A model generated the notes under the pieces. That model was not told the DNA's origin, made no database searches, and saw only the letters and a program-made list of their open reading frames with translations. A program made the position numbers and the translations under genes. From IMG/VR virus record IMGVR_UViG_3300035703_000005, positions 124,001 to 188,000 of that record: a stretch of DNA of 64,000 nucleotides. One strand, written 5' to 3'. Every line of letters begins with the position of its first letter. Within the stretch, counting starts at the first letter, position 1. Of the stretch, positions 1 through 43,065 are shown piece after piece.

Positions 1-1370
1 AGAATTTTAGCAGCCTTTACTCTAGTTGCACCACGAACTCTCTCAGCTTTCTCAGTCGCAGTTAAACCTTTTTTTGGATTTTCTTCAGTTTTTTTTGGCT
101 TTTTTTCAGTTTTTTTTGGCTTTTTTTCATCATCACCATCACCACGAATATCCGCAAGAAGATCATCTAACTTTCCCTCAGACAATGGAGAGAATTCCAA
201 AATCATTTTTTGAACTAAAGAAACTTTCTCTTTAACTTCTTCTTTCTTTTTTTCAGGAAGACCTTCATGTTTTGTCTTTGCAAAGTCTCTTGCTGCCTTC
301 TTGCTCATACCTTCAGCAGCCTTTGCAACCTCAGGAGATGCAGGAGTTCCTCCCTTCTTTGCAGCATAAACCATTCCCATAAATCTTTGTTGCGCTCTAC
401 TTAAAGCCTTTTCTTCAATGTATTCTTCCTTAGTAAGTTCTCCAGTTGCTTTTGCTTTACGAATCTTCTTTGGATTCTTTAACTTACCGCCTGGATACAT
501 ATCCTCTTCATCGTCACGATCATAGTCAGGATCCACATTCGCACGATGTCTTGCTGCTCTCTCTGGAGATGCCTTATCGTCATGAATACCTGATCTACGA
601 AGAGGTGAAGTCTTTTCTGCTTCTCTCTTATCCTTTTGCTTTTGACGACTACGGTTCTTCTTGAAGTCCTTCATCGTCATGCCTTCTTCAACCATTTCAC
701 CTTCTAGATCATAAGATTGACGAAGTTGTTTCATTGCATCATTCAATGCATTATTTCTCTTCTGCATTCCATATGCAGCACCTGCAATACCTGTTCCAGG
801 ATTCTTGATATTTTGGCCTTTATTTGCAGCACTTACACCAGAGTCTGCAGCTTTTTTCGCTCTATTAATAGCTGCACCAGCAAGTGCAGCACCACCAGCA
901 GCAAGCCCAGCAGCAACTAATGGTGCAATTTCATCAAGTTGTTCAGTTTCTTCCTTCATCTTTTCACGTTTTGCCTTTGTCTTAGCAAGAAGTCTTTCAC
1001 GAGCAGCTTCCTGTTCAGACTTAGAAATATTAAACATATCCCTATCGGTTTTAAGTCTCTCCTGGGGAGGAATAACTTTAGCTCTAACTTTTCTACGATT
1101 TAGAAGATACTTATCTGACTTATCGTGATCTCCGTCGTTATCAATATCCTTATCTTCCTTACCAACAGGATCTAAAGCTTCTTCTACCTTCTTCTTTTTA
1201 TCGGCAGCAATCTCGGCACCGACAATCGCTCTCCTCTTCTTTAAATAACTATCGGAAGAATCCGAATCACCATCATTATCCACATCGTCATCTTCTTGAC
1301 CGATAGGATCTAGTTTTTTAGGTGTTTTAGCTTCTGCAACAATACGTGAAAATTCTTCCCAACTAGCCAT
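1..1370 (-). CDS. Modular charged protein, putative internal (capsid-packaged) polyprotein; 3' end outside window; not in ORF track
   Basis: Manual translation from ATG at 1370 is open to the window edge (MASWEEFSRIVAEAKTPKKLDPIGQEDDDVDNDGD...KALSRAQQRFMGMVYAAKKG...). Late promoter ATAAATA at 1397-1403. Confidence 0.85.
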   Translation of the reverse strand, partial: MASWEEFSRIVAEAKTPKKLDPIGQEDDDVDNDGDSDSSDSYLKKRRAIVGAEIAADKKKKVEEALDPVGKEDKDIDNDGDHDKSDKYLLNRRKVRAKVIPPQERLKTDRDMFNISKSEQEAARERLLAKTKAKREKMKEETEQLDEIAPLVAAGLAAGGAALAGAAINRAKKAADSGVSAANKGQNIKNPGTGIAGAAYGMQKRNNALNDAMKQLRQSYDLEGEMVEEGMTMKDFKKNRSRQKQKDKREAEKTSPLRRSGIHDDKASPERAARHRANVDPDYDRDDEEDMYPGGKLKNPKKIRKAKATGELTKEEYIEEKALSRAQQRFMGMVYAAKKGGTPASPEVAKAAEGMSKKAARDFAKTKHEGLPEKKKEEVKEKVSLVQKMILEFSPLSEGKLDDLLADIRGDGDDEKKPKKTEKKPKKTEENPKKGLTATEKAERVRGATRVKAAKI

Positions 1371-1395
1371 TTATTTTGTAGAAATACTGCTAGTT

Positions 1396-2652
1396 TTATT
1401 TATTCTTTTTGCCCTTGCGGAATTTATCATAAATTGAAGTAATCTTAACTCCAGTATAACTCTTAACTTCTTGACCTGGAGTTAATGATTGAACATATTC
1501 CCTATATTCATCTGTTCCAATTTCGTGAGGATTCTCTACAAGATCTTTCAACCATGACTTAAACATTACGTCATCTTCAGTTACACAAATGACATAATTT
1601 GTTCCTCTACGAATTACCTCTCCTCTGAGTCCGGTATTCATATTTTCAACAAGATTACCAACCTCATAGATATGATCTACAAGATATGCATCTCTCATAC
1701 CTTCCTCATCGAGTTTAGGAGCTATTTCCCATACTTCAGTTCCTTCTTCAATATTCATAGATCTACGAAGGACATTAAATAATTCCTTTTTCTGCATATT
1801 ACCAAGAGTATCTGGAACACCCTTAGCAAATTTTACAAAATCTCCTTCTGCAGCCGCAAGTCTCAACTTAGATGCAGACATTCCAGTTACATCATCCGAA
1901 TCAGGATCTCTTTCTCCAGCAGAAACTACTTCAAGTTGATCATAGTTATAAAGCTCTCCATTATACTTATGACTTAAACCTTGAAATTCACCAAGTCTAT
2001 CTTGACCAACCATAATGATCATATTACTATGACCCTCTTCATTTGCGCCAGTCAATACATTGAAAATCGTCTTCGCGCCCTTATCATCAACAATACTATC
2101 CGCATAGTCTGGGAACATTTGACGCATATAAGAAATCTTCATTTGTGGAGTGAGAGGATTCTTCTTAGCGTCTTGTGAACGAGATGGATAAATTCTCAAT
2201 TCATAACCCCTCTTCTCAGCTTCCTTTGCAGCTCTCTTGAGAAGTTTTTCGTGGCCAATTGTAGGTGGATTAAATCTACCAAATACTACAACGACTCCTG
2301 GTGTTTCTGGAACTGGTTTTTCGACAGAAGGTTGTTCTTGTGAAGTTTGTTGTTCTGGTGGAACTTGTTGTTGTGTAGTTTGTTGGGTAGGTTCTTGAGT
2401 AGGAGCCTGTTGTGTTTGTGGTGCAGCTTGTGGTTGAACTGCTGCAGATTGAGGTTTAGAAGGTGAATCCTTTTGTCCAGGTATATTGTCACTACCAAAA
2501 AACTTTAATTTTCCAGATACAGTCTTAGCAACAAACTCACCATTTTTATCATACCATCCTCCATGACCGTCTCCACTCAAACCGAGTCTTTTGGCTTCGG
2601 CAGATGCAGAGGTCTCTCTAGCTTCAGTGAAAAACTGAGTGAAATTCTTCAT
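1396..2652 (-). CDS. Cytidyltransferase-like (HIGH-motif) nucleotidyltransferase
   Basis: VVVFGRFNPPTIGH, VGQDR and MSASKLR motifs; a typical cyanomyovirus gene near mazG; Q/P-rich linker after the N-terminal domain. Confidence 0.85.
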   Translation of the reverse strand: MKNFTQFFTEARETSASAEAKRLGLSGDGHGGWYDKNGEFVAKTVSGKLKFFGSDNIPGQKDSPSKPQSAAVQPQAAPQTQQAPTQEPTQQTTQQQVPPEQQTSQEQPSVEKPVPETPGVVVVFGRFNPPTIGHEKLLKRAAKEAEKRGYELRIYPSRSQDAKKNPLTPQMKISYMRQMFPDYADSIVDDKGAKTIFNVLTGANEEGHSNMIIMVGQDRLGEFQGLSHKYNGELYNYDQLEVVSAGERDPDSDDVTGMSASKLRLAAAEGDFVKFAKGVPDTLGNMQKKELFNVLRRSMNIEEGTEVWEIAPKLDEEGMRDAYLVDHIYEVGNLVENMNTGLRGEVIRRGTNYVICVTEDDVMFKSWLKDLVENPHEIGTDEYREYVQSLTPGQEVKSYTGVKITSIYDKFRKGKKNK

Positions 2653-2693
2653 TATTATTAATTAGTTAGGATTCCTTAACCTTTAGGTATTTA

Positions 2694-3770
2694 TTATTTT
2701 TCTTTTGGATTGTATGCGGCAGGACCAGCTTCAACATAGAACTTCAATTCCTTAATTTGAAAATCTTCTCCAGATCCAACAACCCTTTTCTTAAATCTCA
2801 GTTGAAATAATTCTTTATTCAATGGTTTTATAATAAATTTTAAGTTATCACTAGTTTTCTGAACATCTATTGAGTTAGTATTTTTCTGAAGTTCATTTAT
2901 ATAATCTGGGGTAATTTCTTTTATTTTTGCCTTGTCAATATCTACAACATTTGCAAGATCGGATCCGAAAGTTACGGATTTAAATAACTCAAATGCCTGA
3001 TCTTTGAAGGAAGAATTTCTAGAAGCAGTTTCTAAAGATTCCAAAGTTTCCTTGTAAAGTTCTTTTATGGTATCTACTTTTAATTTTTTTTCTGCGGGAG
3101 TTCTAGCTTGTGCAAGTTGTTCCCCCAATATTTTTCTATACTTAGCTTCTTCAGGCAATGAAATTCCAAATCTTTTAAGTATATCCATCATTCCATTATA
3201 GGGACTCAAATTAGCAAGAGTTTTACTACCAGATTTCAAAGAGAAACTTAAAGTCCTATCCATTTGTTTTTGACCATTCATAGTTACCGAAACTTCAAGA
3301 TCTCCCTTAATATCTCCACCTGAAGATTCTCCGGCAATACCATCGGCATTAATAATAATTTCAACTTGATCAGATTTATTATTTTTTAAATAACTATCTT
3401 TAGTTTTTTGAATAAGAGTCCTATAGTGTGTTTTAGTGTACAGAATTAAATTATCTATTTTTCTTTCAATATTACCTATATCAGCACTCTTTGCGTAAAG
3501 AGGTTCATAATTTGGACCAAAAGCCATATTAGTTGATTCATATTTTAGTCTAACAATTAATACAACTTTAATTTTATCTTGTGGTTTTCCGTCTTTAAAT
3601 TCTCTAATTACTATTTTTGCATTTCCATTTCTAAAAATAGATGGATCAATTTGTCTCCTCCATTTATTAATATTTCCTTTATTGATTGTCCCACCACCAC
3701 TGGCAAATAACTCCGCAAGACATATGGCAAAGATGCCTTCCATTACATCCCCTTCATTTAACTTTGCCAT
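2694..3770 (-). CDS. Hypothetical protein, possible PD-(D/E)XK nuclease fold
   Basis: 358-aa ORF; KGDLEV...SFSLKSG resembles a restriction-like active site; late promoter at 3795-3801. Confidence 0.5.
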   Translation of the reverse strand: MAKLNEGDVMEGIFAICLAELFASGGGTINKGNINKWRRQIDPSIFRNGNAKIVIREFKDGKPQDKIKVVLIVRLKYESTNMAFGPNYEPLYAKSADIGNIERKIDNLILYTKTHYRTLIQKTKDSYLKNNKSDQVEIIINADGIAGESSGGDIKGDLEVSVTMNGQKQMDRTLSFSLKSGSKTLANLSPYNGMMDILKRFGISLPEEAKYRKILGEQLAQARTPAEKKLKVDTIKELYKETLESLETASRNSSFKDQAFELFKSVTFGSDLANVVDIDKAKIKEITPDYINELQKNTNSIDVQKTSDNLKFIIKPLNKELFQLRFKKRVVGSGEDFQIKELKFYVEAGPAAYNPKEK

Positions 3771-3815
3771 AAGTATTAAAAAAACCCTTCCAAATATTTA
3801 TGGAAAGGTCTTAAA

Positions 3816-10907: not shown

Positions 10908-11072
10908 TTATGCGCCGTCTCCACCAGCACTTGAAGAAGATCTCTTAGCACATGCTTTGCCCCCAGGTGCCATGGCATACTTAATTACTTTATAGCACTT
11001 TACTTTAGGTTTAGGAGCAGGTGATCCGAAATCTCCTTCCGCTTCGGACATAAATTGCTTAAAGGATTTCAT
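10908..11072 (-). CDS. 54-aa protein with T4-like capsid-targeting N-terminus, not in ORF track
   Basis: MKSFKQFMSEAEGDFGSPAPKPKVKCYKVIKYAMAPGGKACAKRSSSSAGGDGA; overlaps the hsp20 3' end; AAGGTG upstream. Confidence 0.7.
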   Translation of the reverse strand: MKSFKQFMSEAEGDFGSPAPKPKVKCYKVIKYAMAPGGKACAKRSSSSAGGDGA

Positions 11073-11496
11073 ACACCTTACGTTTCTGATGTTCAGGAAT
11101 AATCCTATTTAGTTTGACATGGAGTAATCCATCCTCAAACTTAACATCCGAAACTTTAACATCGTCGGATAATGTCCAAGTTCTCGTAAAGGCTCTCTTC
11201 GCAAGACCATTGTGAAGATATTCCCCTAGTTCGGAAGTTTCCGCCTTCTTCGCTTCAACGAAGAGTTTGTTCCATTCAGTGAAAACTTCAATATCTTCTT
11301 TTTTATATCCTGCAAGAGCAATCTCTAGACGAAACTCAGTTTCACTCTCCTTAATCAAATTGTATGGTGGATAGTTTGTTGTAGATTCGTGAACCGTTCC
11401 TAAACGGTGAAACCACTCATCCATACCAATACTATATTTTTCAATATCATTTAGAAATTTGTCAATGTTAGCCGTGTTATACTTGGCGAGTAACAT
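11059..11496 (-). CDS. hsp20: Small heat shock protein
   Basis: NYPPYNL, LEIALAG, HNGLAKRAF, FEDGLL, IIPEHQK. Confidence 0.95.
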   Translation of the reverse strand: MLLAKYNTANIDKFLNDIEKYSIGMDEWFHRLGTVHESTTNYPPYNLIKESETEFRLEIALAGYKKEDIEVFTEWNKLFVEAKKAETSELGEYLHNGLAKRAFTRTWTLSDDVKVSDVKFEDGLLHVKLNRIIPEHQKRKVYEIL

Positions 11497-16974: not shown

Positions 16975-18105
16975 TCAGAACGGAGCGGGTTGGTCAAGGT
17001 CGTAAGTTACGTGCTCACCACCTTCAGAAGGCATTTTGAAATCAGCATCCACCTTGTCATAGAGTTCCAGGAAAGATTGCTTGGTCTCATCGTCAAAGCG
17101 ATTCACACACACTTGAATCGCTTTAGCCTTGTCATTGAAGATGCTGTAGGCACGGATGATATGAACCAGACGGCGGGTGCTGATGATTTCTTCAATACCA
17201 CCATCGTAAAAAGTCTTGCGGATAATGTCGGCCCAATCTGCGAGACGCTTACAGAAATTGGAATCATTTACACCAAGAGTTTGAGCAACTTTCTCAAGAA
17301 TCTTGACTTCATTTGCAACAGAAGGATATTCCTGTTCAAAGGTCACAGGGAAACGCTCAAGAAATGCTTCATTGAGAACGTTAGTACCGATAAAACGACC
17401 ATCATCCGAACCCTTACCTTTGGTATTTGCAGTAGCAACAACATTGAAACCAGAAGTAGGTTTAACGAACTTACCAATTTTCTTGAGGAAAACGCCTTTA
17501 CCTTCAAGAACAGATTGCAGACACAGAATTTTGTTAGAGGCAAGGTCAATTTCATCCAACAGGAGAATTGCGCCACGCTCAAGGGCTTCAATCACAGGGC
17601 CATTGTGCCAAGCGGTTTCACCGTTCACAAGACGGAAGCCACCAATCAGATCATCCTCATCAGTCTCAATGGTAATGTTAACACGGATTAGCTCCCGACC
17701 CAACTGAGCACAAGCTTGTTCCACTCCAAAAGTCTTCCCGTTACCGCTAAGACCAGTGATAAAGGTAGGGTAAAACAGACGACTGGAAATAATTTTCTTA
17801 ATGTCGTTAAAATTGCCAAACTTGACGAAGGTATCATCTTTTTCGGGAATAAGGTTTTGATGTACTTCAGGGAGAACTGCAACATTGTTAAAAGAACGCT
17901 CAATTTCTTCCACACGCTCTTGAGTCACTTCCAGATTCCAACGACCACGAGCAGTCTTAAAATTTTCAAGACGGCGAGTAACCGTAGGATAAGAAAGATT
18001 GTTCATCGCACAATAGGCTTTGACATCACCAGAAGTAATATCAGAACCATAAGTGGACTTAAGACCTTCCAGGATTTGATCGTCGTTCATTTGAAGGCGG
18101 GGCAT
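16975..18105 (-). CDS. cobS: CobS-like MoxR-family AAA+ ATPase
   Basis: GLSGNGKT, LLLDEID, ATANTKGKG, NEAFLERF, ISTRRL. Confidence 0.9.
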   Translation of the reverse strand: MPRLQMNDDQILEGLKSTYGSDITSGDVKAYCAMNNLSYPTVTRRLENFKTARGRWNLEVTQERVEEIERSFNNVAVLPEVHQNLIPEKDDTFVKFGNFNDIKKIISSRLFYPTFITGLSGNGKTFGVEQACAQLGRELIRVNITIETDEDDLIGGFRLVNGETAWHNGPVIEALERGAILLLDEIDLASNKILCLQSVLEGKGVFLKKIGKFVKPTSGFNVVATANTKGKGSDDGRFIGTNVLNEAFLERFPVTFEQEYPSVANEVKILEKVAQTLGVNDSNFCKRLADWADIIRKTFYDGGIEEIISTRRLVHIIRAYSIFNDKAKAIQVCVNRFDDETKQSFLELYDKVDADFKMPSEGGEHVTYDLDQPAPF

Positions 18106-18130
18106 TGTGTAGTGTGTTTTTCAACTGAGG

Positions 18131-18190
18131 CTATAATACGACAAAAAAAGGGGGGTTGGAAGCCCCCTTGTGCAGGTTTTCAAAGTGGCC
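18131..18190 (-). repeat. Intergenic element copy 1: imperfect palindrome, G/C hairpin, U tract and TATTAT box
   Basis: GGCCACTTTGAAAACCTGCAC-AAGGGGG...CCCCCCTTTTTTT-GTCGTATTATAG. Confidence 0.7.
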
Positions 18191-19045
18191 TCAGTCTCTT
18201 GCCGAGTGCATCATTTCTTCGCCGCGTTTTTTATCTTCACGGCGTTTTGCTACCTTTTGTGCAGGAGAAACTGCAGGTGCTTCTGGTTTTACTTTACCAG
18301 TGCGATCTTTTTTCTTTCCTCTTTCTTGAATTGCTCCACCAGCACCCATTCTACCAGCACCCATAACCTTGTGCATGTGTCTCATGACTTTTGAGTCAAG
18401 GTCATCGCCGCCCATGGTGCCACCTTTAACTACTGGTTTTCCAGTTTTATAATCCTTACCAGTTTTTTTCTCATAACGATTAAGTTCCATAATATCCTCA
18501 AACCAGGCTTCACTCATGTTGAGAATAATTTTATCGGCAGCTTCTTCAGTTGAAGCAAAACCTTCATCAAGAAGATAGGAAAAAACTAACTCATAAGCAT
18601 TAAAACTTTCAGCACTTACACCAGTTTTCTTCTGTCTTTCTGCCTTTTTACCTTTTGGTTTTCCACCAGAATCACTTGGACCACCATCAAAGTCTGGATC
18701 ATAACCAGTATGTCCGTATTCCGCCTCACCTCTTGCGTGATCTCTATCACTTTGAGTCATTCCACTTCTTCTACCTGAATAGGGAGAAGGTTTAGTTGAC
18801 TTCTTACCTCTATTTCCCGCATCAGGATTAAGAGTTCTGTAGTGGTGTTTTTCTGCAGATTTTACTTTTGCAGTCTTTTCACCTCTTTTTGAAAATCCAC
18901 TTGCAGGAGTAGATCTTCTCTTATTAGCAAGGGAACCATAAGCAGCAGTTGCTTTTGGAGTTTGTCCATAAGAACCTTCTGCTTCATCAAGTTGACCAAC
19001 CTGACTATAAGCTTCTTGCAATCCCTGTAAATGTTCTGCGTCCAT
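18191..19045 (-). CDS. Basic modular late protein (MDAxxLxxLQEAY family), paralogue 1
   Basis: Start set at MDAEHLQ after CTAAATA (19065-19071); shares the YLLDEGFA...NMSEAW module with 21406..21981. Confidence 0.8.
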   Translation of the reverse strand: MDAEHLQGLQEAYSQVGQLDEAEGSYGQTPKATAAYGSLANKRRSTPASGFSKRGEKTAKVKSAEKHHYRTLNPDAGNRGKKSTKPSPYSGRRSGMTQSDRDHARGEAEYGHTGYDPDFDGGPSDSGGKPKGKKAERQKKTGVSAESFNAYELVFSYLLDEGFASTEEAADKIILNMSEAWFEDIMELNRYEKKTGKDYKTGKPVVKGGTMGGDDLDSKVMRHMHKVMGAGRMGAGGAIQERGKKKDRTGKVKPEAPAVSPAQKVAKRREDKKRGEEMMHSARD

Positions 19046-19072
19046 TTTTACAATACTTTTTAAGTATTTAGT

Positions 19073-19096
19073 AAAAAAGGAGGGTTTCCCCTCCTC
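19073..19096 (-). terminator. Intrinsic terminator fused to a late promoter
   Basis: GAGGAGGGGAAACCCTCCTTTTT immediately followed by ACTAAATA. Confidence 0.75.
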
Positions 19097-21305
19097 ATGC
19101 AACTAGTTCAATGAACTCTCCAAGAACTTTTTTATTCATTTTTTTACACTTCAGTGACTTAGCGAAGGCAGTTCGGATTTGAGTTTTACTTGCATCATCT
19201 GAAACATCAAACTCCGTCTCGTTAGAAAGAGCCGAACCGGAAAGTCCAAAGTATGCATGATATCCGGATTTCTTAATTGCAAAAGATTTATTCTTTTTCC
19301 AGTCATTCATGATTTCATTATACTCCTTATTTTCCTGATAGTAACCAAAAGAATAATCGGAACTCTCATAGTAACGACGAATAAAACTTCCCGCATCACG
19401 ACCTTCTAGAACCCGAATACCAATAAAGTTTATATCAGTGAAACGATCACGAAGATTACGAAGAAGAACATCAGTAAAACTAGTATAATCTCCTTCCAAC
19501 TTATAAGTAGAACCGATCTTACGATCACGAAGAATTGTATTGGATCCGATAGAGTTCAGACCAATGTACACTTCCTCAGTATCATAATTAAAACGACCTT
19601 TGAATTCCTTATGAAATTTAAGAGGTGCAGCTTCACCATCAGTCAGAACAACACATTGAACTTTCTGAAGTTTATTTTCCCGTTGAAATTGAGGAAGAAT
19701 TTGATGAAGTGCAACCAAAGTTTCATTCAAGGGAGTTCCAGAAAGAGAGAGACGGTGTGGATGACTGTACTCAGGTGCATTATTATAACTGTACTTAAAC
19801 TCTTTAGCTAACCTAAAGATATTGATCATCTGTTCTTCAAGAACACGATTATTTACTTTACTAGTAAACAAGTTCATGAGTGAAAAAGTTTCATCTACAT
19901 AGATCAATCCGTGTTTCTTTTCATAATGCGGTTTCATAGATTTTGGACGATGATTTTCATCATAGTCATAACGACGCCACTCATTAGTAAAAGCATAGAC
20001 CTCAAACGGAATCGCAACTTTCTTACAAAACCACATCAAGTTATAAAGTTGTTTGAGAGTGTCCATCATCACTTGAGACATGGAACCAGACCAATCCAGA
20101 ACAAATACAAGACCATGATTCTTACCATTAGAAAGAGTGGTGACTTTCTTGAAAAGATCTTCATTGTATTTGTAAGTATGAAGTTTAGAACAGTCCAGAA
20201 CACCAGTACGAGCGGTTGTAGCACGGGCATAAGAATCTGCTGCCTTACGACACTCAAACTCTTTCACAAGATAATTAACTTCTTTCTGCGCAGAACGCTT
20301 GAATTCCCGATACTCTTTATCTACCTCACCAAAAAGATATTCTTTGGGATTGTGTTCATAAGAATATTTTGCAATAGTTTTTTCCCACCAATCGTTGATC
20401 TCTTTATGAACTTCAACATTTAAACCAATAACACTATCGAGATTAAGTTTAGGAAGTTCCAGATAAGTGTTTTCTGACCCATTCATGTTCACAAGATCAC
20501 GAAGAGCTTCTTCTAGATTGTCAGCGGTTTTAACTTCAGGTTCGGCGGATTCTCCACCAAGATTTGAACTAGTATCAGTAGGGGAATCCATTTTATCATC
20601 CGACTGACCATCAGAGGACGCCTGGCCACCCTCTCCAGAAGTTTCCAAGTCATCCTCCTGAGAAGGATTTTGTTCCTCTTGAGGCGCACTTTCCGACCCA
20701 TTGCCAGGAGTTGATTGAAGATTATCAAAAGAATCAATTTTAATTTGTTCTTTATCCTTCCTCTTACAATACTCGTAAAGTTTTACGGCAGCTGCAATCG
20801 CATCATCAAAAGTTTCTGCATCAGCAACCATATTCAGGATTTCAGTTTCTTCACCCCGTTCAATAGGAATCTGAGTGAACCCACCAATCTTAAACCACAG
20901 ATTTACGCGATCTGCAAGATTGTAGGTAGAGATATCATCGTCTTTGATTTGAAAAAAATCGTCCTCATGCAGTTCTTTATAACCTGCGAAGAAAGATTTG
21001 TTCAGACCCGCATAACGACGCTTCATCATCTTCTCAATACGAGCGTCTTCCGTCACATTCACGAATTGTTGAGGAATCGTAAACTTCTTACTCCAATCTT
21101 CATTAGGAGTATAGAGAGCATGACCCACTTCATGACCAACAAGCATGTCATAGACTGCGTTAGAAGCTTTCTCCCACATCGGAAGAGTCAGAACGCGAGT
21201 GTCTACATTGAAACATGCAGTAGGAACTTGTTTGTGTTCTACCACAAGGTCTTCTGTTGCGAGAAGACGAGCGAGTTGACCTTTGACTTCGTGATTAACA
21301 GGCAT
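19095..21305 (-). CDS. CobT-like protein: N-terminal HExxH domain, acidic linker, C-terminal VWA
   Basis: HEVGHAL and EDARIE; MIDAS DWSGSM, GTPL, LTDGE; partner of the cobS-like ATPase; start set at MPVNHEVKG. Confidence 0.85.
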   Translation of the reverse strand: MPVNHEVKGQLARLLATEDLVVEHKQVPTACFNVDTRVLTLPMWEKASNAVYDMLVGHEVGHALYTPNEDWSKKFTIPQQFVNVTEDARIEKMMKRRYAGLNKSFFAGYKELHEDDFFQIKDDDISTYNLADRVNLWFKIGGFTQIPIERGEETEILNMVADAETFDDAIAAAVKLYEYCKRKDKEQIKIDSFDNLQSTPGNGSESAPQEEQNPSQEDDLETSGEGGQASSDGQSDDKMDSPTDTSSNLGGESAEPEVKTADNLEEALRDLVNMNGSENTYLELPKLNLDSVIGLNVEVHKEINDWWEKTIAKYSYEHNPKEYLFGEVDKEYREFKRSAQKEVNYLVKEFECRKAADSYARATTARTGVLDCSKLHTYKYNEDLFKKVTTLSNGKNHGLVFVLDWSGSMSQVMMDTLKQLYNLMWFCKKVAIPFEVYAFTNEWRRYDYDENHRPKSMKPHYEKKHGLIYVDETFSLMNLFTSKVNNRVLEEQMINIFRLAKEFKYSYNNAPEYSHPHRLSLSGTPLNETLVALHQILPQFQRENKLQKVQCVVLTDGEAAPLKFHKEFKGRFNYDTEEVYIGLNSIGSNTILRDRKIGSTYKLEGDYTSFTDVLLRNLRDRFTDINFIGIRVLEGRDAGSFIRRYYESSDYSFGYYQENKEYNEIMNDWKKNKSFAIKKSGYHAYFGLSGSALSNETEFDVSDDASKTQIRTAFAKSLKCKKMNKKVLGEFIELVA

Positions 21306-21325
21306 GAACTTTGTTTCGTATGCGA

Positions 21326-21384
21326 CTATAATACACAAAAAAGGGGGGTCAAACCCCCCTAGTGTGCCAGTTTGGAAAGTGGTC
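21326..21384 (-). repeat. Intergenic element copy 2
   Basis: GACCACTTTCCAAACTGGCAC-ACTAGGGGGG...CCCCCCTTTTTT-GTGTATTATAG. Confidence 0.7.
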
Positions 21385-21405
21385 TTCAACCATTAAGATT
21401 TTAAT

Positions 21406-21981: not shown

Positions 21982-21996
21982 CTTATGAGATACTTT

Positions 21997-22140
21997 TTAG
22001 ATATTTATAAAAGAAGAAGCGCCCTGTGAGAGGCGCTTCTTGAGTGCTTGGCGTCTTGCCTTCGCTTGTCGCAGTGCTTGTGGTTTAAGTTTTCGTTTTT
22101 GTTCCTTCTTGGAATGGTGTTGCCAGTTTGGTGTGGTCAT
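21997..22140 (-). CDS. Small basic hypothetical protein (47 aa), not in ORF track
   Basis: MTTPNWQHHSKKEQKRKLKPQALRQAKARRQALKKRL...; ATGA overlap with the gp46 stop. Confidence 0.7.
   Translation of the reverse strand: MTTPNWQHHSKKEQKRKLKPQALRQAKARRQALKKRLSQGASSFINI
22006..22041 (-). terminator. Terminator-like hairpin running into a late promoter
   Basis: AAGAAGCGCC-8 nt-GGCGCTTCTT then CTTTTATAAATA. Confidence 0.65.
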
Positions 22141-29971: not shown

Positions 29972-31366
29972 TCACATTAAGTTGGAGACCTTTACTCTTC
30001 TGTAGTAACGGTTTGCATTGAGGCGTAGTCTGCCAAGACCCTGATCGGTTCCTTCTGCAAATGGGTTTGCAACGATTCCGTAACGAGTCTTGAATCCGAT
30101 TTTTGGCTGGAAGGTGTCCTGACCAACGGCACGAACCATCTGGAGAGGAACATATGGGCAGTAGAAGATACCAGCATCGTATGCGCTAGAACCCTTATAA
30201 CCTACAACGTAGTACTGATCAGCAGCAACGTTTGCAGCATATGGGTCAATGTATACACGATACTTACCTTGGAGAACACCAGCGAAGGTGTTACCAGTGT
30301 CATCAACGTTTAGGTTAGCGTTGAGTGCAGGGGTGTAATCAAGAACACCAGCCATGGTTAGAGCGGAAGCAACGTCTGCGGAGCAGATGATGGTATTGCC
30401 CTTTCCTCTACGAGTTCTTTGTGCGATTGCGTTAGCATCACGCTCGATCTGGAAAAGTAGACCCTTGAACTTCTCAACGGACCAACGACCATTGGAGTCA
30501 ACGTCGAGGTCAAATACACCAGCGGTAGCAGTGTTAACAGCAGCACCTTGCTCAGCAACCTTATAGATGGTTCTGATGACTTCTCTGTTGATTTCAGCGA
30601 GGATCTCAGTGGAGAGAATGTTAGCAAGTTCTGCTTCTGCGTTTAGACCGTGGATTGCCTTGAGGTCTTGAGCGAGCTCTAGGGAGTACTCAGCCTTGAG
30701 GGCACGTGACTTAGCAGTTACGGTAACTTTCTCGATGCTGAATGCCATCTGGTTGAAGGCATTAGATGCAGAATCTCCAAGAGCTTCTGAATCACCAGTA
30801 GCCATACCCTGACCAACATTATATGGTGATGGGTTGGTGGTTGCAGATCCAACTGGGTTGAGAACGTTAGGATTGGTTCCATCCTGGTTGGTTGTACCGA
30901 AACCAACGAGACCATCGGAGAATCCGTTGGCAAGGTTACGGCTGTTGTTCTGACCAGAGAAGGTGGTATCTACTTCATCGAAGAAGGTCTCAGTACCAGA
31001 CTGAGAATCGTAACGGGAACGCATTGCGAAGATGAGTCCAGTAGGACCACTCATTGGCTGAACACCACAGATGTCATAAGCAATGAGGTTAGGCATTGCA
31101 CGACGAATGAGGCTGATTAGAACTGGGTCGAAACCAGCAACAGGTCCACCAGCAGTAGCGGAACCAGAGAAACCACCAGTACCAGCAGAGTTAACTGGGG
31201 AAGCTTCGCCAAGGAACTCAGCAGACTCGCGTAGTTCTCTCTCTTGGTTCTCTAGAAGTTGTGCAGTTACTGCACGTCTGTGGGAATCTTTGATGTCGCC
31301 TAGACCGTCGAAGTCTAGAACTGGAGCCCACTTCTCCATTAACATTTGTGAGTTAATTCCGTCCAT
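29972..31366 (-). CDS. gp23: Major capsid protein (gp23)
   Basis: GVQPMSGPTGLIFAMR, KSRALKAEY, YCPYVPL, GFKTRYG. Confidence 0.99.
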   Translation of the reverse strand: MDGINSQMLMEKWAPVLDFDGLGDIKDSHRRAVTAQLLENQERELRESAEFLGEASPVNSAGTGGFSGSATAGGPVAGFDPVLISLIRRAMPNLIAYDICGVQPMSGPTGLIFAMRSRYDSQSGTETFFDEVDTTFSGQNNSRNLANGFSDGLVGFGTTNQDGTNPNVLNPVGSATTNPSPYNVGQGMATGDSEALGDSASNAFNQMAFSIEKVTVTAKSRALKAEYSLELAQDLKAIHGLNAEAELANILSTEILAEINREVIRTIYKVAEQGAAVNTATAGVFDLDVDSNGRWSVEKFKGLLFQIERDANAIAQRTRRGKGNTIICSADVASALTMAGVLDYTPALNANLNVDDTGNTFAGVLQGKYRVYIDPYAANVAADQYYVVGYKGSSAYDAGIFYCPYVPLQMVRAVGQDTFQPKIGFKTRYGIVANPFAEGTDQGLGRLRLNANRYYRRVKVSNLM

Positions 31367-31426: not shown

Positions 31427-32599
31427 TCACTTTTTAGCAACGTTGGAAAGCGCGCGTAGATAAGCGTCCATAGAAGGTGAATGATTCACTTCTTGGAAAT
31501 TTGCTTCTTCTGTTAGATTTTCCGTTTCGTTTGCTGGAATACCAGCGTTTCTTGGGAAGTATGACTCCCTAAGAGTTACCAGCTTCTGGTAATAGTCATT
31601 CTCACTCTCAAACTCAACACTTTCAGAGAGGCTTGCAAGCTTGTCCTTTTGGGAAAGAGCTAGACCCTCAGAAACTTGGTTTAGAATTCTGTCAGCGGCA
31701 GATTCTGCAAGTTTCGTATTTAGAGCAATATTCTTTTGAATTTGCTCGTTGAGTTTTGTCTCCATTTCATCAAGTTTTTCTACCATGCTCTCTAGTACAT
31801 CATATTTTTCTTCAGGCATTGATACATAATGTTCTTCAAAAAGACCCTTCATACCAGCGATGAAGGACTCAGTGATCTCAGTCTTGAGACCACTTTCAAC
31901 TGCGAGAGCATTTTCTTCTAACCATTCGGATGCAACATACTCAAGATATGAGTCAACTCTTTCGGTTAGTTCTAGTTTGATCTCTTCGATCTCTTCTGCA
32001 AGAGCAGCAGCATAGTGCTCTTCCAGAGAAGATTGAATTTCTTTTGTTTTAGCGTGAAGAGCAGCTTCAAATACTAATTTTGCTTTTTCTTTGAATTCTT
32101 CGGATAACTCTTCTTCGCCGGAGAGGAGAGCATTTACGTCCTCATCAATGATAGAATTTACATCCTCTTCGACAACTTCTTCTGCATCTTCCTCAGATTC
32201 GGTTTCTTCAACCTCACCTTCTTCGTCACCTTCTTCTGCAATTATTTCTTCTTCAACTTCTTCTTCAACTTCTTCTTTCATACCACCACCTTGACCTGGG
32301 GTAGCAACGGAAGTTGCAGAAGTTGCAGCAGCATCAGGTGCAGAAGCTTTAGCATTTACAACGTCCTTAACTTGCTTAAGAGTTGCGCCAGGTGTTTTTA
32401 ACATGTTGGAATTATCATCTGGCTTGCTGTTTTCTGGAGTTGGGCCTCCAAGATCTTCCCAAGCACCAGTTTGACCAGGAGTTGCAACTGGAGTTGCGCT
32501 CTTGTGTGGTGCTTCCGGTGCAGATGCGTTAGCATTTACAGCGGTTTTGGATTGTGAAGTGCCGGTTTCCATTTCTTGTAAATTTTTACCACGGGACAT
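31427..32599 (-). CDS. gp22: Prohead core / scaffold (gp22)
   Basis: Acidic coiled coil; LSEEFKEKAKLVFEAA, VDSYLEY. Confidence 0.93.
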   Translation of the reverse strand: MSRGKNLQEMETGTSQSKTAVNANASAPEAPHKSATPVATPGQTGAWEDLGGPTPENSKPDDNSNMLKTPGATLKQVKDVVNAKASAPDAAATSATSVATPGQGGGMKEEVEEEVEEEIIAEEGDEEGEVEETESEEDAEEVVEEDVNSIIDEDVNALLSGEEELSEEFKEKAKLVFEAALHAKTKEIQSSLEEHYAAALAEEIEEIKLELTERVDSYLEYVASEWLEENALAVESGLKTEITESFIAGMKGLFEEHYVSMPEEKYDVLESMVEKLDEMETKLNEQIQKNIALNTKLAESAADRILNQVSEGLALSQKDKLASLSESVEFESENDYYQKLVTLRESYFPRNAGIPANETENLTEEANFQEVNHSPSMDAYLRALSNVAKK

Positions 32600-32646: not shown

Positions 32647-33297
32647 TTAAAGATTTGATAAAAACTCTTGGAACAGATTTAATTTCTGTTCATCAAGTCT
32701 TCTTTGATCAACAAGAGTGTTAATTCTCTTTTGAGTATTGGAAGCAAGTTGTTCACGAAGAATTCCTCCTTCCCAAACCCACTCCTTTCCTTCCATAATT
32801 CCAGATACAAATGCATCAGGAGCTGAAGGATCAGCAACAATATCTGCAGCAGTTGCAAGCATAAAATCTTCACCAACTACTTTATAACCTTCATTAGTTG
32901 TAGTTAATGAACCTACACCACGAGAAGAAACTCCTAACATTACACCTTCATCAAGAAGAGAAGATGCAATTTTGCCCATTGGAGTATTAAGAATCTGAGC
33001 TTTACCTACAAAGTTATTTCCCTCTTGAACAAGAGAAGTAATTTTGTGAGAAACACGATCGAGATTAACTGTTGGTCCATCTGGATGACCAAGCTCTCCG
33101 AGAGCACGACCCTTCGCAACAAAACTTTCATTATAACGATTTACTTCACGAGTAAGGGTTGTAATAGGATACATTCTTCCATTACGATTTTTAATTTCGC
33201 CTTGGAGAAATACTCCTTCAATATAAAGTTTTTTATCAGCACCTTTTCCTTCGGTGATAATCTTTACATTTGTTACTTCTTCGGTGATTAGTTTCAT
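32647..33297 (-). CDS. gp21: Prohead protease (gp21)
   Basis: NRNGRMYP, GELGHP, VSSRGVGS, DIVADPSAPDA. Confidence 0.97.
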   Translation of the reverse strand: MKLITEEVTNVKIITEGKGADKKLYIEGVFLQGEIKNRNGRMYPITTLTREVNRYNESFVAKGRALGELGHPDGPTVNLDRVSHKITSLVQEGNNFVGKAQILNTPMGKIASSLLDEGVMLGVSSRGVGSLTTTNEGYKVVGEDFMLATAADIVADPSAPDAFVSGIMEGKEWVWEGGILREQLASNTQKRINTLVDQRRLDEQKLNLFQEFLSNL

Positions 33298-33302: not shown

Positions 33303-33572
33303 TTAGTTGGTGAGTCCTACTTTAGCAGCTTTAACGGATGCAGAAGATGCAAAAATAACATCAGTTGAGGCTTTTTGGAGAAACTCTACTGATTGGTCAG
33401 GCATTGTAAAAGTTGAAGTTGATGCAGCACCAACGGCAGTAGAAATACTAACAGTAGCTGCAGCTCCAGAACCATTAAATAATCTTACACAAGTAGCTTC
33501 GCCAATACTTGAAGCAGCACCTGCGGTTGTTGGCATTGCAACTTCTGTTGCAATTATTTTTGTTCTTTGCAT
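33303..33572 (-). CDS. Small Ala/Thr-rich hypothetical virion protein
   Basis: 89-aa ORF in the head cluster; late promoter at 33598-33604. Confidence 0.7.
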   Translation of the reverse strand: MQRTKIIATEVAMPTTAGAASSIGEATCVRLFNGSGAAATVSISTAVGAASTSTFTMPDQSVEFLQKASTDVIFASSASVKAAKVGLTN

Positions 33573-33603: not shown

Positions 33604-33807
33604 TTATTCCTCGTCTTCTCCATGAGAATCACTATATTCAACCTCAGATTCGGTTTCGGTATCTTGTTGCCCAAACATTGAAGCGGCAACCAAGGGTCTA
33701 ATAGTATCAATATTTTCTGCAGATTTTTGCATTAAAATTTCTTTAATTTTATCACTAATATCTGCAGGGGATTCGTTAGAAACCATCATGTTAATAAGAT
33801 CATCCAT
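33604..33807 (-). CDS. Small acidic prohead protein (gp67-like position)
   Basis: Follows the portal; late promoter at 33835-33841. Confidence 0.65.
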   Translation of the reverse strand: MDDLINMMVSNESPADISDKIKEILMQKSAENIDTIRPLVAASMFGQQDTETESEVEYSDSHGEDEE

Positions 33808-33840: not shown

Positions 33841-35550
33841 TTAGATTCTGCCACCCTTAGGCATTTTTATTTTTGGAGCCTCTTCTGTTGGTGACATTTC
33901 TGCTGCAGTTGCATCAGTTTCTGGGTTCATTGGAACTTCACCCATTGCTGGTTGTTCTGCTGGTGGTTCTTGGCCAACTGGAAGTCCAGTCATTGGATCT
34001 ACTGGAGGTGAAATTATTCCTGCTGCTTGTTCAGCACCTATTTGTTCATCTATTTCTACGATTTCAGCATCAGTTTGTTTGAGAATATTTCTTCTTACAT
34101 AATCCACAGAGAAATATTTGCCAACATAAGGTTCTGCAGCTACTAAAACATTCAATCTATTTTGAATGAGTTCGGCTTCTTTCAGTTCCGCAAAATGATT
34201 GTCATAAACAAAATCAAATTGAATATGGTCAGATAAAATTTTCCAATCTTCTGGAGTAACAATATTTTTAAGAATGAGTTGAGTTTTCAACATATCCATA
34301 AAGAGATGGGAAAACCTCTTTCTCATTCTCCCCACAAACTTAGTAAACTTAATTTCGTCTCTTAAAATTTCGGAAGATCTACCAAGATTAAATCCACCAC
34401 TTCCACTTAAACGTGACTCTGGAACTCCAAGTGCTCTATAAAGTTTTTTCTGAAAATATTCAACATCGGTAAGTTCTCCAAGGTTTTGACCACCTGGGAG
34501 TGTAGTGATTTCAGTTCCTCTACCACCTTCACGACGAGGGAGCCAGAAATCCTCAAGCATTGACATCATTCTTTTGTCATCACGAATCTCACCAGTATTT
34601 GCATCGTAAACTAATTTGTTACGATAACGAGTCATAACATCACGAAGATATTGTTCTGCCTTGATTTTGGGAAGATTGCCCACATCAATGTAGAAAATAC
34701 GACGTTCTGGAGCACGAGATAATCTGTAAATTACAAGGCTATCTTCAATCATTCTAAGCTGATTGAGTGCTTTAATTGCTTTGTGTAGATATGAAAGAAC
34801 TACTTGTTTATTTCTATCTACTAAACCAGAGTGAACATAGGTAATTGCATCTTTGGAAATTCTTGCGGCGCCACCAATTGCACTTTTAAAATTACTAGTT
34901 GCCTGACCTGCACCAGTACCTCTGATATTTGGATCATATTCAAAAAACTCCTCTACTTCTGGAGTTGCCATATTTCCATCTGGAGCTTTACCTGCAGTAA
35001 CTGAAAAAGATGGATTTAATACATGTTTGCCATCTTTTTTAATTTTTCTGACAAGTTTAATCTTCATGGGATCAATATATCTTACTTCTTTGATCCCTTC
35101 TTCTGGTTTTTCTAAATTAATGACTTTATGGTAATAAATCCTACCATCAACGTACCAATTCCTTAAAATTTCGTGGCATCTTTTATCAAAATCCAAAAGT
35201 TCTTTGATATATTTAAATTCTTGTCTTATAATATCTTTGAGTCTATCCGAAGCCGGTACATTTTGAAGATCAATTTGAATTGGAGAATCATTTTGATCGG
35301 AAACTATTGCCTCATTGATTATATCTTCAATTGCACTATCCACTTCTGGATGAATAGCCATTTCACGATATCTTTTAATTAGATCATATTCGGACTTATA
35401 GACGCCTTCAATATCAACATATTGTCCATAAAATCCACTCGCAACATAAAAATCCGAAGAATCTTCCTGATTCTCCGGAACAGGAGAGACGATAGATTTT
35501 GATCTATCGTCCTCCGAGTCTTGGATTTTGAAACCAAATAATTTAGGCAT
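33841..35550 (-). CDS. gp20: Portal protein (gp20)
   Basis: YRLSRAPERRIFYIDVGNLP, EDFWLPRREGGRGTEI. Confidence 0.98.
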   Translation of the reverse strand: MPKLFGFKIQDSEDDRSKSIVSPVPENQEDSSDFYVASGFYGQYVDIEGVYKSEYDLIKRYREMAIHPEVDSAIEDIINEAIVSDQNDSPIQIDLQNVPASDRLKDIIRQEFKYIKELLDFDKRCHEILRNWYVDGRIYYHKVINLEKPEEGIKEVRYIDPMKIKLVRKIKKDGKHVLNPSFSVTAGKAPDGNMATPEVEEFFEYDPNIRGTGAGQATSNFKSAIGGAARISKDAITYVHSGLVDRNKQVVLSYLHKAIKALNQLRMIEDSLVIYRLSRAPERRIFYIDVGNLPKIKAEQYLRDVMTRYRNKLVYDANTGEIRDDKRMMSMLEDFWLPRREGGRGTEITTLPGGQNLGELTDVEYFQKKLYRALGVPESRLSGSGGFNLGRSSEILRDEIKFTKFVGRMRKRFSHLFMDMLKTQLILKNIVTPEDWKILSDHIQFDFVYDNHFAELKEAELIQNRLNVLVAAEPYVGKYFSVDYVRRNILKQTDAEIVEIDEQIGAEQAAGIISPPVDPMTGLPVGQEPPAEQPAMGEVPMNPETDATAAEMSPTEEAPKIKMPKGGRI

Positions 35551-36275: not shown

Positions 36276-36315
36276 TTTTTGTACCTCTTATAGGGATTGA
36301 TGATTTTTTACAAAA

Positions 36316-38730: not shown

Positions 38731-38814
38731 GTCTTTCCCTCTAAAGAAGATTCAACTTGACTACAAATATTTATTATTTGCTAACTTTACATTGGGGAAA
38801 CCGCCAATGAACCG

Positions 38815-40694: not shown

Positions 40695-40697
40695 AAA

Positions 40698-40868: not shown

Positions 40869-40869
40869 T

Positions 40870-43065
40870 TCATTTACCTTGAATAACTACGATTGGTTTA
40901 GATGGATCGGTAGGACTTGGATACCATTGCAGTATAACTGCGCCTGGATAAAACTTTTCAATTTCCGCTTTTACTTCATCTTTAGAAGGTCTCTTCATAT
41001 TTGGGAAGAAGAGTTGAAGATTCATCATTGGTCTACCTCTCCAAGAGAAGAGTATAGTATAAACATTACCAGTAGATTGTATCCGTTGATAATCTTCGTT
41101 TGTAATTTGTCCTGGTTGAATTACGGAGTCTGCAAGAGGTAGAGAGGGTCCTGAAAGCTTCTTAAGTGCGGCATTCTTTTCGTTAGGATTAGTATTACCA
41201 GTTGCAAGATTTCGGATCTTAGCTTGTTTTTGTGCTTGTCTATGTCCAGAACCAATTTCAAAACTTACATTTTCATTTGCTGGATGCACTTTTGCAATAC
41301 TGTAAGGTTGTTCTGGAGCTAATGAGGAAGGTAGTGAGAACATTCTCCAATATCCTTCACCGTATCTACATTCAGATGCAGTTTCATTTTTTTGACATTT
41401 GGGACAATATCTAATTCCCATTTCTTCTGGAATGAACTCTTCTTTCTTCGTCTTATTTCCCCAGTTTTTTGCACCAACCTTACGACACTTAACGAGAGCG
41501 CCAGATGCATATGCAGAAGGCCAAACCTTATAACGAGATTTTACTTTTGAATAACATGCGTCCTTTTCTTCACTAACATCCAAAAATTCTTCTTTTCTAA
41601 TATCTGACTTTGTTACTGATGATGGATAAGAACTCTCTTTACTCTTAGGAACATTTGTTCCCATAATTTCTCTTCTTACTTGACCAGCATCTTTTTTCCA
41701 AAATGGATTCTTCTTAAATTCGTGTTTCTTACCCTTGGGTTGATCCCTCTTCTTTTCCATTTTCTTCTGTGCCGCAGAAAGATTGCCGTGTCTAGCATAT
41801 TCTTTCTCGCCAGGACCACCCTTCTCAAATGATTGAGTATCTGGGTTATCTACACCTAATTGTTTTCTCTTGGCCTCAGACTTTTCCTTTGGAGTATAGC
41901 CTGAAGGATTTGGATTTTTCTTGTCATCCCAAGCAACTTTACCTTCAGTCGCAACCATTTTTGCCTTACCCTTTCTATTGGGATTTGGATCTTTTTCATT
42001 CTTACGACGAAATGCTCTCTCCTCTTCCTTATCGGAGAGCTCTGTTTTCATTTTACTTGAACCGCACTTTGGTTTAGTTGTTTGTCCTGGTTGTTTTGCA
42101 CAGGGTTTCCCTGCGTATTTACCACCCAATTGAACCCAACCAGGGGTGCCATCAGAAGCGCGACTCTTAGTAAACCAGTCACGCAAAGAACTATCACCAC
42201 TTTTGTTTTCATTAATAGAATCCTCCTTCACACAGTTAGGAACGACTTTTTTGCCCTTCTTTTTCATTCCAAGTTGTTTGTATCCATCCCAGCATTTTTC
42301 ATTTAAACCTTTAATCCATTCATCTGGAGTTTTATCATGTTTTTTAACAAATGCATTATGAAGTTCTTTTGCAGTCATATCATGTTCTTTCATGATACTA
42401 CGCATTAATTTATCAATGGAGTCATAAGAAGTATCATCTAATTTTTTAAGTCTACTTTCAAGTTCTTCAACTGCATCTTCATTTATTGGTTGAGTAAAAC
42501 TTTTAAACTTATAATCACTACCTTTAATGATGTCAACAACATGTGCAAAAGTATTACCATTTGCGTCATGAAGTTCTGTCCATTCTTCCTTTACTTTCTC
42601 CATCTTTTTGAGTTTGGAGTAATAATTGGGAATTTCATCTAAATGTTGCAATGCAATATCCATTGCTTCATCATTATCTGTAGTATGTTCATGTTCAACT
42701 TTCATCCCCATCTCAAGTTGTTTTTGGATGATTGATGGAGATACTTTATGCTTTTTTGCGATTTCTTCTACTGATTTATGACCTTTGAAACCTTCTTTAA
42801 CTTCTTTCTTTCTTTCGGTATCATCTTCTCCATGAGAGAGATGATCAGCTACTGTATCAAGATACTCTGCAGCCTTTGTAATCTTTGATTGCACCCATGC
42901 TTCCAAATCACCTTCACCTTTAAGTTTAGTCATCAATCTGATGATTGCAGCCTGTGCAGTTTTAAGTTCTCCACGAGCCATAGAAAACTCAAAATCCTCC
43001 CCAAGAGGTGCGATTGTTTCTAGGTCTGCAATAATAGACCACTCTTTAAAGGTGAGTTTATCCAT
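40870..43065 (-). CDS. 731-aa multi-module protein, putative internal polyprotein
   Basis: A string of unrelated small modules (GMKVEHEHT..., KCWDGYK...PNCV, KDACYSKVK...WPSAYASG) separated by xxE sites; CTAAATA at 43090-43096. Confidence 0.8.
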   Translation of the reverse strand: MDKLTFKEWSIIADLETIAPLGEDFEFSMARGELKTAQAAIIRLMTKLKGEGDLEAWVQSKITKAAEYLDTVADHLSHGEDDTERKKEVKEGFKGHKSVEEIAKKHKVSPSIIQKQLEMGMKVEHEHTTDNDEAMDIALQHLDEIPNYYSKLKKMEKVKEEWTELHDANGNTFAHVVDIIKGSDYKFKSFTQPINEDAVEELESRLKKLDDTSYDSIDKLMRSIMKEHDMTAKELHNAFVKKHDKTPDEWIKGLNEKCWDGYKQLGMKKKGKKVVPNCVKEDSINENKSGDSSLRDWFTKSRASDGTPGWVQLGGKYAGKPCAKQPGQTTKPKCGSSKMKTELSDKEEERAFRRKNEKDPNPNRKGKAKMVATEGKVAWDDKKNPNPSGYTPKEKSEAKRKQLGVDNPDTQSFEKGGPGEKEYARHGNLSAAQKKMEKKRDQPKGKKHEFKKNPFWKKDAGQVRREIMGTNVPKSKESSYPSSVTKSDIRKEEFLDVSEEKDACYSKVKSRYKVWPSAYASGALVKCRKVGAKNWGNKTKKEEFIPEEMGIRYCPKCQKNETASECRYGEGYWRMFSLPSSLAPEQPYSIAKVHPANENVSFEIGSGHRQAQKQAKIRNLATGNTNPNEKNAALKKLSGPSLPLADSVIQPGQITNEDYQRIQSTGNVYTILFSWRGRPMMNLQLFFPNMKRPSKDEVKAEIEKFYPGAVILQWYPSPTDPSKPIVVIQGK

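Follow-up and report, generated by a model that had tools for sequence, protein, structure and literature searches.

What is encoded by six genes that are dispersed over the genome of a cyanophage and that each start with a short leader ending in Glu and lie behind a late-promoter-like box? The question is raised by a stretch of 64,000 nucleotides (the window), positions 124,001 to 188,000 of IMG/VR record IMGVR_UViG_3300035703_000005, whose parent record is a 248,835 bp contig of a T4-like cyanomyovirus, denoted L001. In Megablast the window groups with T4-like cyanomyoviruses, with Synechococcus phage S-SCSM2R as the top match (~80% identity across the replication genes), and every gene in it lies on the minus strand. 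The six candidates, denoted c1-c6, are found at positions 1-1370, 1396-2652, 10908-11072, 18191-19045, 21406-21981, and 40870-43065. They are probably internal head proteins, directed into the capsid by their leaders and processed by the prohead protease gp21, the large ones being polyproteins. An initial annotation had read them as packaged internal proteins and polyproteins, and this interpretation is supported by the match of the leaders to T4, their portability, the detection of relatives in virions, and the positions of shuffling breakpoints.

In the proposed mechanism, late transcription would give rise to precursors whose N-terminal propeptide, of 10-23 residues, docks to the gp22 core during prohead assembly. 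The propeptide would be taken off by gp21 (Peptidase_S77) after the Glu of a hydrophobic-x-Glu site, as in gp23, and in c1, c6, and probably c4 and c5 the protease would also cut at sites between modules. Since such sites occur at almost every module junction, each precursor would yield a set of small peptides and domains, most of them basic. The basic products, like the transferase encoded by c2, would remain inside the head together with the DNA, presumably to be ejected into the host. The early steps, in which the leader would target the protein to the head, are modeled on T4 and on the virion proteomes of relatives. We infer the docking to gp22, the cleavage at each site, the copy number, the encapsidation in this phage, the ejection, and the functions of the modules as effectors. 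For the latter, anti-defense action, host takeover, and DNA condensation, as named in the initial annotation, are equally candidate functions.

Leaders of the six candidates

All six open reading frames (ORFs) are intact, and their N-termini are exactly those given in the initial annotation; c1 exits the window. The leaders of c2 (MKNFTQFFTE/A, the slash marking the predicted cut) and c3 (MKSFKQFMSE/A) are of the same type as those of the T4 internal proteins (IPs; NC_000866), namely MKTFKEFTST in ipI and MKTYQEFIAEA in ipII and ipIII. In T4 this peptide, the capsid-targeting sequence (CTS), is both necessary and sufficient for packaging (PMC9026906; PMC5694885), and by genetics residues 4 and 7 act in targeting and residues 8 and 10 in processing (PMC9026906). 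These functional positions are the ones conserved in leaders of the c2/c3 type, and it is there that c2 and c3 match ipI, ipII, and ipIII. Defined as a propeptide of 10-19 residues with an aromatic residue at position 4, Phe at 7, an aliphatic residue at 8, and Glu at 10, the T4 CTS is present in c2 and c3 and, as a variant (W4, F7, V-A-E13), in c1; c4, c5, and c6 fall outside the strict definition and have other conserved leaders. c2 and c3 are the two occurrences of the strict pattern in the window, against 0.1 expected from shuffles.

The cargo of c2 (1396-2652, minus strand, 418 amino acids) is the best defined of the set and is predicted from its sequence to be an NMNAT/cytidylyltransferase-like enzyme (PHROG 395, 3.9e-96; nucleotidyltransferase domain Pfam PF01467, CTP_transf_like, 27.4 bits vs a cut-off of 21). 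In ~60 IMG/VR homologues of c2, reaching down to 40% identity, the residues M1, K2, F4, F7, [FLI]8, E10, and A11 of the leader are invariant or nearly so, as read from 31 distinct leader DNAs. The codons of these positions vary synonymously, and therefore selection acts on the peptide. c3 (10908-11072, minus strand, 54 amino acids) consists of its leader and a basic peptide of 44 residues with two Cys. It is a real gene, because a family of 22 IMG/VR loci codes for a product of 51-56 residues with a late box upstream, with codon variation that is synonymous.

The leaders of the six candidates form four conserved classes and no single motif. That of c1 (MASWEEFSRIVAE/A) follows the pattern M-[AD]-[ST]-W-x-x-F-S-x-x-[LIV]-x-E, a CTS variant with an insertion of three residues, and the genes syntenic with c1 in other phages have the leader ..N-D-I-S-[KR]-V-Y-[LF]-x-x-[IV]-x-E. 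c4 and c5 share the class-2 leader (MDAEHLQGLQE/AYSQVGQLDE/ and MDAQELCNLQE/AYNQVHQVDE/, respectively), described by M-x(3-8)-L-x-E/A-Y-x-x-V-Y and a further [LV]-x-E around residue 21. The conserved leader of c6 has 23 residues and ends in PLGE (M-[DE]-K-L-T-F-K-E-W-S-I-L-x-D-L-x-x-I-x-P-L-G-E); relatives of c6 in other phages bear the canonical MK.F..F..E leader.

The leader is portable between unrelated cargo families. A scan of IMG/VR with MK-x-F-x-[QE]-F-x-x-E-A as a DNA pattern gave at least 85 matches in at least 80 loci. The matches listed are a sample; in every one of the 85 the leader opens an ORF at its 5' end (83 without an in-frame upstream Met), the cargo left after removal of the leader forms at least 35 clusters unrelated to each other (transferase, DPBB lytic transglycosylase, glucosaminidase, ClpP-like protease, GNAT, DUF6267, and many unknowns), and T4-core genes common with the window are present in 47 of the 80 loci. 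One further cargo family leads to cyanophages of the T4 type, among them S-SM2 and P-TIM68. A TAAATA box is located at -50 to -12 in 58 of the 85 leader ORFs, compared with 146 of 668 other ORFs of the same loci (odds ratio 7.7).

An (A/C)TAAATA box (NATAAATA/NCTAAATA) is found 25-41 nucleotides 5' of the ATG in all six candidates, where such a promoter had been ascribed to most of them. The boxes, all on the minus strand, are AATAAATA for c1 (1397-1404, 32 nucleotides upstream) and c2 (2688-2695, 41 nucleotides), ACTAAATA for c3 (11106-11113, 39 nucleotides) and c4 (19065-19072, 25 nucleotides), TATAAATA for c5 (22002-22009, 26 nucleotides), and TCTAAATA for c6 (43090-43097, 30 nucleotides); those of c4 and c5 stand just after a GC-rich hairpin and a T-run. 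Late transcription of c1-c6 is predicted in silico from these boxes.

The partners expected for such leaders are encoded in the window, on the same strand, in a complete head module of gp20, gp21, gp22, and gp23. gp21, the presumed processing enzyme (32647-33297), matches Peptidase_S77 with E = 3.7e-38 and T4 gp21 with 44% identity. gp22, the scaffolding core protein and presumed docking partner of the leaders (31427-32599), matches T4_CASP (1.2e-77) and T4 gp22 (36% identity). The portal protein gp20 (33841-35550) and the major capsid protein gp23 (29972-31366) were assigned by Pfam and by comparison with the T4 proteins. Both motifs that the initial annotation had pointed out in these genes were confirmed: the N-terminus of gp21 is MKLITE, and the predicted maturation cut of gp23, FLGE54/A, aligns with the T4 site FLTE65/A. 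The T4 head proteins, IPs included, were also considered as homologues of the window proteins; in BLASTP they matched gp20-gp24 only, so the resemblance to the T4 IPs lies in the leader alone.

Departures from the leader pattern were noted in other phages. A relative of the NKSGDSS module of c6 (L124:984 onward) starts with MKGFREFFLD, which places Asp at leader position 10; a T4 CTS with Asp at this position blocks processing and still allows targeting (PMC9026906). In the transferase homologues of the S-PRM1/S-CAM9 group (L046-L061, L067) the first ATG gives MASQQAK..., with ..RTILE[AG]QT in frame upstream, and the leader may begin at a non-ATG codon or be lost.

Modules and junctions of the large proteins

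c1 (1-1370, minus strand) is a modular protein of 773 residues, of which the N-terminal 456 are encoded in the window, with the stop beyond it (full ORF L001:5283-7604). Its modules comprise two LDPxGxED..DNDG repeats, DUF3008 (residues 322-373), and DUF6321 (residues 696-770). A full-length homologue of c1 was looked for and none was found, and the modules alone recur, in 486 phage records. c6 (40870-43065, minus strand, 731 amino acids) is located between terS and terL and is built of cassettes: DUF5661, a CWxGY..C peptide, NKSGDSS..GWVQLGG, GKVAWDD, DACYxKVK..SAYASG, a zinc-ribbon-like RYCPKC unit, and a C-terminal beta module. c4 (18191-19045, minus strand, 284 amino acids) is a basic modular protein, and c5 (21406-21981, minus strand, 191 amino acids) is its paralogue. 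The predicted fragments are mostly basic (isoelectric point 9-11), and the leaders and short spacers are acidic. As to the function of the cargo, sequence searches of Pfam, PHROG, and PDB gave DUF3008, DUF5661, DUF6321, DUF6267, or nothing.

The orthologues of c6 differ from each other by entire cassettes, and the cassettes inserted or deleted in c1 and c6 orthologues have xxE at their flanks. In c6 the junctions, with the variable cassette in square brackets, read ...VATE/[GKVAWDD...VSE/]EKDACY..., ...VKE/[insert...VKE/]..., ...INE/[DAVEEL...LNE/]KCWDGY..., and ...EVKE/[AVLGR...xKE/]GFKG..., and in c1 orthologues the swaps are found directly after LDE147, VEE229, MSE637, and VKE688. Residues E23, E91, and E286 of c6 are invariant across 20 orthologues. 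The DUF3008, DUF6321, CWxGY, NKSGDSS, GKVAWDD, DACY, and DUF5661 modules exist elsewhere alone or in other orders. When alone, they may start at the very residue that follows xxE, as the DUF3008 genes do at K321 of c1 and a gene of locus L265 does at D197 of c6; the stand-alone homologues of c4 have their C-terminal end exactly at IME187, and those of c5 end at VDE124. In further loci a module stands directly behind a leader: NKSGDSS in L093 (FVIE/ANKSGDSS), DUF6321 in L110 (after FIKE/A), GKVAWD in L253 (...VVMAE/GKVAWD), and DACY in L273 (MRIHEIVE/GKKDACY).

The earlier claim that (L/I/V)xE separates the modules is borne out by statistics. With naive automated mapping, 5 of 15 stand-alone starts are within one residue of [LIVM]xE (P = 6.5e-4 vs random positions). 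All nine curated boundaries follow a Glu, a residue with a frequency of 9.9% (P = 9e-10), and eight of them have L, I, V, or M at P3, vs 30 of the 149 Glu residues in the background (P = 2e-5). The coincidence of shuffling breakpoints with xxE, which had been suggested as a check, was also found: out of 129 unique internal BLAST breakpoints in c1 and c6, 24 are within one residue of [LIVM]xE (7.6 expected, P = 5e-7) and 47 within three residues (17.0 expected, P = 2e-11), where the P values are indicative, since the breakpoints are not independent events.

The same junctions could belong to proteins that are packaged by their leaders, and perhaps trimmed, with the large ones staying intact; xxE would then be a linker convention or a microhomology for recombination. 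The GAA/GAG-rich codons of the junctions could indeed promote illegitimate recombination, no cleavage product is reported in the published virion proteomes, and S-SCSM1 ORF29 and ORF92 and S-SZBM1_139 were identified there as gene products, with no size information. A generic acidic linker, however, would not predict the hydrophobic P3 of eight of the nine boundaries (20% in the background). The exact start of stand-alone genes at P1' (K321 and D197), the placing of the same modules directly behind a cleavable leader in L093, L110, L253, and L273, and the C-terminal xxE that inserted cassettes carry of their own likewise argue against intact proteins, which we regard as unlikely. Cleavage of the large proteins between their modules is the alternative towards which we lean, if with no great confidence.

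Virion proteomes of other cyanophages

The transferase was detected by mass spectrometry in purified virions of four T4-like cyanophages, S-SM1 (PMC3037559), S-SZBM1 (PMC9146016; S-SZBM1_140 and _139 were detected), S-SCSM1 (PMC9602691; ORF91), and S-CREM2 (PMC10665884; ORF154-156 were detected), and an NMNAT is reported in the virions of S-CBWM1, a cyanomyovirus not of the T4 type. The N-terminus of S-SZBM1_140 is MRFRQFIIEA, and S-SCSM1 ORF91, which shares 44% identity with c2, starts with MKSFLQFLKEA. Other products listed as virion proteins of S-SCSM1 are related to c1, c4, c5, and c6: ORF89 has a class-2 leader (MDSKTFNSLSEAY) and the core module of c4/c5; ORF92 has a class-4 leader and modules in common with c1 and c4; ORF93 is a stand-alone DUF3008, equal to residues 322-372 of c1; and ORF29 is a polyprotein of the c6 family, in the same position between terS and terL, that also bears the DUF6321 module of c1. 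Virion relatives are thus on record for all candidates but c3, five out of six.

Several observations, besides the mutual dependence of the breakpoints, weigh against targeted and processed head proteins. The trait from which the initial annotation had started, a short leader ending in Glu, is present in all six candidates; it comprises four classes and alone is not discriminating, because [LIVM]xE is found within the first 25 residues in about half of the window genes. c6 has no Glu at position 10, and in class-2 leaders the conservation extends to either side of the first LxE (EAYxxVY), which may place the actual cut at the second site, around residue 21. Moreover, [LIVM]xE is a common tripeptide with many copies within folded domains, for example the catalytic domain of c2, where cleavage is unlikely, and the well-defined boundary ATE374 has Ala at P3. 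The AlphaFold2 model of c6 (alignment of 20 sequences) has three short confident islands and no global fold, with a mean predicted local distance difference test score of 41 and a predicted template modeling score of 0.21; such a low-confidence model is compatible with beads on a string and too weak to serve as evidence. As to the particles, the published virion proteomes report no semi-tryptic peptides, S-SZBM1_194 and S-SCSM1 ORF30 are undetected in the proteomes of their phages, the NMNAT homologue of S-SCSM2R, the closest relative in culture, is missing from the 23 proteins listed for its virions, and the authors of the S-CREM2 study caution that late proteins made in abundance may be carried along when virions are purified (PMC10665884).

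This caution and the S-SCSM2R list would fit a leader that does not target the capsid in cyanophages but acts in translation initiation or binds a late chaperone, with abundant late proteins of the cytoplasm or associated with tails co-purifying with the particles; late promoters would suit any late protein. It is hard to reconcile with a motif under selection at the protein level (synonymous codon variation), with the fit of the leader to the experimentally defined T4 CTS at its functional positions, with the transferase in four independent virion proteomes of T4-like cyanophages, or with the co-occurrence of the leader and genomes that have gp21 and gp22 (at least 47 of the 80 sampled loci), and we consider it highly improbable. 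A chance resemblance of unrelated hypothetical ORFs with Glu-terminated starts, for which the loose [LIVM]xE pattern in about half of the window genes speaks, is already disfavored and hardly credible, given the strict motif (2 vs 0.1 expected), the conservation of every leader class across families, and the enrichment of breakpoints at [LIVM]xE sites.

If c1-c6 are packaged, a broader picture may tentatively be drawn, although we hold it to be rather doubtful. In marine T4-like phages the xxE-delimited cassettes would be independently exchangeable units of an evolvable delivery platform, packed into the capsid via several interchangeable leader classes, released by the capsid maturation protease, and injected, and the injected NMNAT-like enzyme would act as soon as infection starts, for instance against defenses that deplete NAD+. 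The studies of S-SCSM1 (PMC9602691) and S-CREM2 (PMC10665884) have suggested that such an enzyme, once delivered, helps to maintain NAD+ homeostasis when infection begins. The authors of the proteomes remark on the recurrent detection of the transferase, offer no mechanism, and caution on co-purification. In five virion proteomes (the four of T4-like cyanophages and that of the non-T4 S-CBWM1) the NMNAT/cytidylyltransferase and many hypothetical proteins are unexplained in the particles, and a T4-type leader together with gp21 sites offers a concrete, testable mechanism for enzymes inside cyanophage particles.

Known systems and neighboring genes

The T4 proteins IPI, IPII, IPIII, and Alt have, like the candidates, a propeptide of ~10 residues (MK-x-[FY]-x-x-F-x-x-E) that is cut after the Glu of hydrophobic-x-Glu by Peptidase_S77 (the cut being predicted here from the motif), and likewise late expression (predicted here from the boxes), basic cargo that is hypervariable behind a conserved leader, and an enzyme among the cargo, which is Alt in T4 and the NMNAT-like c2 in this phage. 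In contrast to the T4 IPs, the mature parts of the candidates have no sequence homology to T4, and at least four leader classes are found where T4 has one. Several of the precursors are strings of exchangeable modules with a predicted cut site per junction, whereas cleavage in T4 takes the leader alone from the IPs and both ends from Alt. The genes are also dispersed here, among the replication genes and in the hyperplastic region between terS and terL.

Jumbo phages of the phiKZ type (phiKZ, 201phi2-1, SPN3US) have many head-internal proteins cut at x-x-Glu by a homologous prohead protease, some of them at several sites, with propeptides that are thought to target the prohead (PMC5694885). 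Their motif is S/A/G-x-E and their propeptides often exceed 100 residues (PMC5694885), whereas the boundaries here are [LIVM]-x-E in eight of nine cases and the leaders have 10-23 residues; a cassette architecture with modules that also exist as stand-alone genes is not described there. T4 gp22, gp67, and gp68, which have homologues or positional analogues in the window, likewise possess many (L/I)xE sites and are cut by gp21 into small peptides. Their fragments are scaffold debris leaving the head, whereas the modules here are conserved, basic, encoded elsewhere by independent genes, and present in mature virions of relatives. A further comparison is with the polyvalent proteins described by Iyer, Burroughs, Anand, de Souza and Aravind in 2017, which are said to be multi-module proteins delivered with the DNA of phages or conjugative elements, with modules that are reportedly shuffled between elements and in part thought to be released by proteolysis. 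These are reportedly very large as a rule, rich in recognizable enzymatic domains, and equipped with processing peptidases of their own; the modules here, in contrast, are DUFs of very small size, and the protease would be that of capsid maturation.

Among the open-access literature we found no paper that ties virion-associated enzymes of cyanophages to a capsid-targeting sequence or to internal proteins, and a cyanophage CTS/internal-protein system with several leader classes and cassette polyproteins has apparently not been described before. With it, dozens of hypothetical gene families of cyanophages become candidates for internal or ejected proteins. Cassette polyproteins with a protease site per junction, if real, would be a compact means by which abundant ocean phages evolve and deliver early-acting factors, and the leader could serve to load foreign proteins into cyanophage capsids.

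Around c1 and c2, additional features were observed. Residues 19-50 and 66-97 of c1 (window about 1080-1314) are a tandem pair of LDPxGxEDxDxDNDGxxDxxDxYLxxRR, a repeat with a calcium-binding-like DxDxDG that is found in many marine phage proteins, Pelagibacter phage records included. In another record (L013:3701 onward, IMG/VR UViG_3300008110_003407) one ORF of 1167 residues joins the c2 transferase to a c1-type polyprotein, either as a true fusion or through a sequencing frameshift. Directly upstream of c2, the ORF at 2694-3770 (minus strand, 358 amino acids) has a CATAAATA box at 3795-3802, 30 nucleotides upstream, and an N-terminus, MAKLNE/GDVME/G, reminiscent of the T4 Alt propeptide, which has six residues. 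The ORF is kept in relatives (63-86% identity), has no Pfam or PHROG match, and is possibly a seventh member of the set; a homology to S-SCSM1 ORF90 or S-SZBM1_141 was considered and found no support in BLAST.

c4 and c5 look like late-gene cassettes that were duplicated and placed amid early-type genes, and their homologues adjoin the transferase gene in other phages. The transcription signals alternate here (18106-18190, 19046-19110, 21306-21405, and 21982-22050): CobS (16975-18105) and a CobT-like "peptidase" of 736 residues (19095-21305) each follow a hairpin and a sigma-70-like box (GTATTATAG), and c4 and c5 are each preceded by a hairpin and a late box and have 5' leaders that are alike (..TAAATA[CT][TC]TAAAAAGTAT..).

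No leader-bearing gene is found near gp23 in this window, unlike in loci L086, L131, L134, L157, L078, and L128 of other cyanophages, where such genes, including that of the DPBB lytic transglycosylase, stand alongside gp23. Between the portal and protease genes, in the position of T4 gp67 and gp68, there are two small ORFs on the minus strand, 33303-33572 and 33604-33807, each with a AATAAATA box. The latter shares 41% identity with S-SCSM1 ORF37, and the former, on visual comparison, is similar to the small Ala/Thr/Val-rich virion proteins S-SCSM1 ORF38/39 and S-SZBM1_195, to which BLAST gave no link. The 61-residue virion protein ORF97 of S-SCSM1 (L076:43121-43306) has 53% identity to residues 60-89 of the window gp23, the segment directly past the predicted maturation cut.

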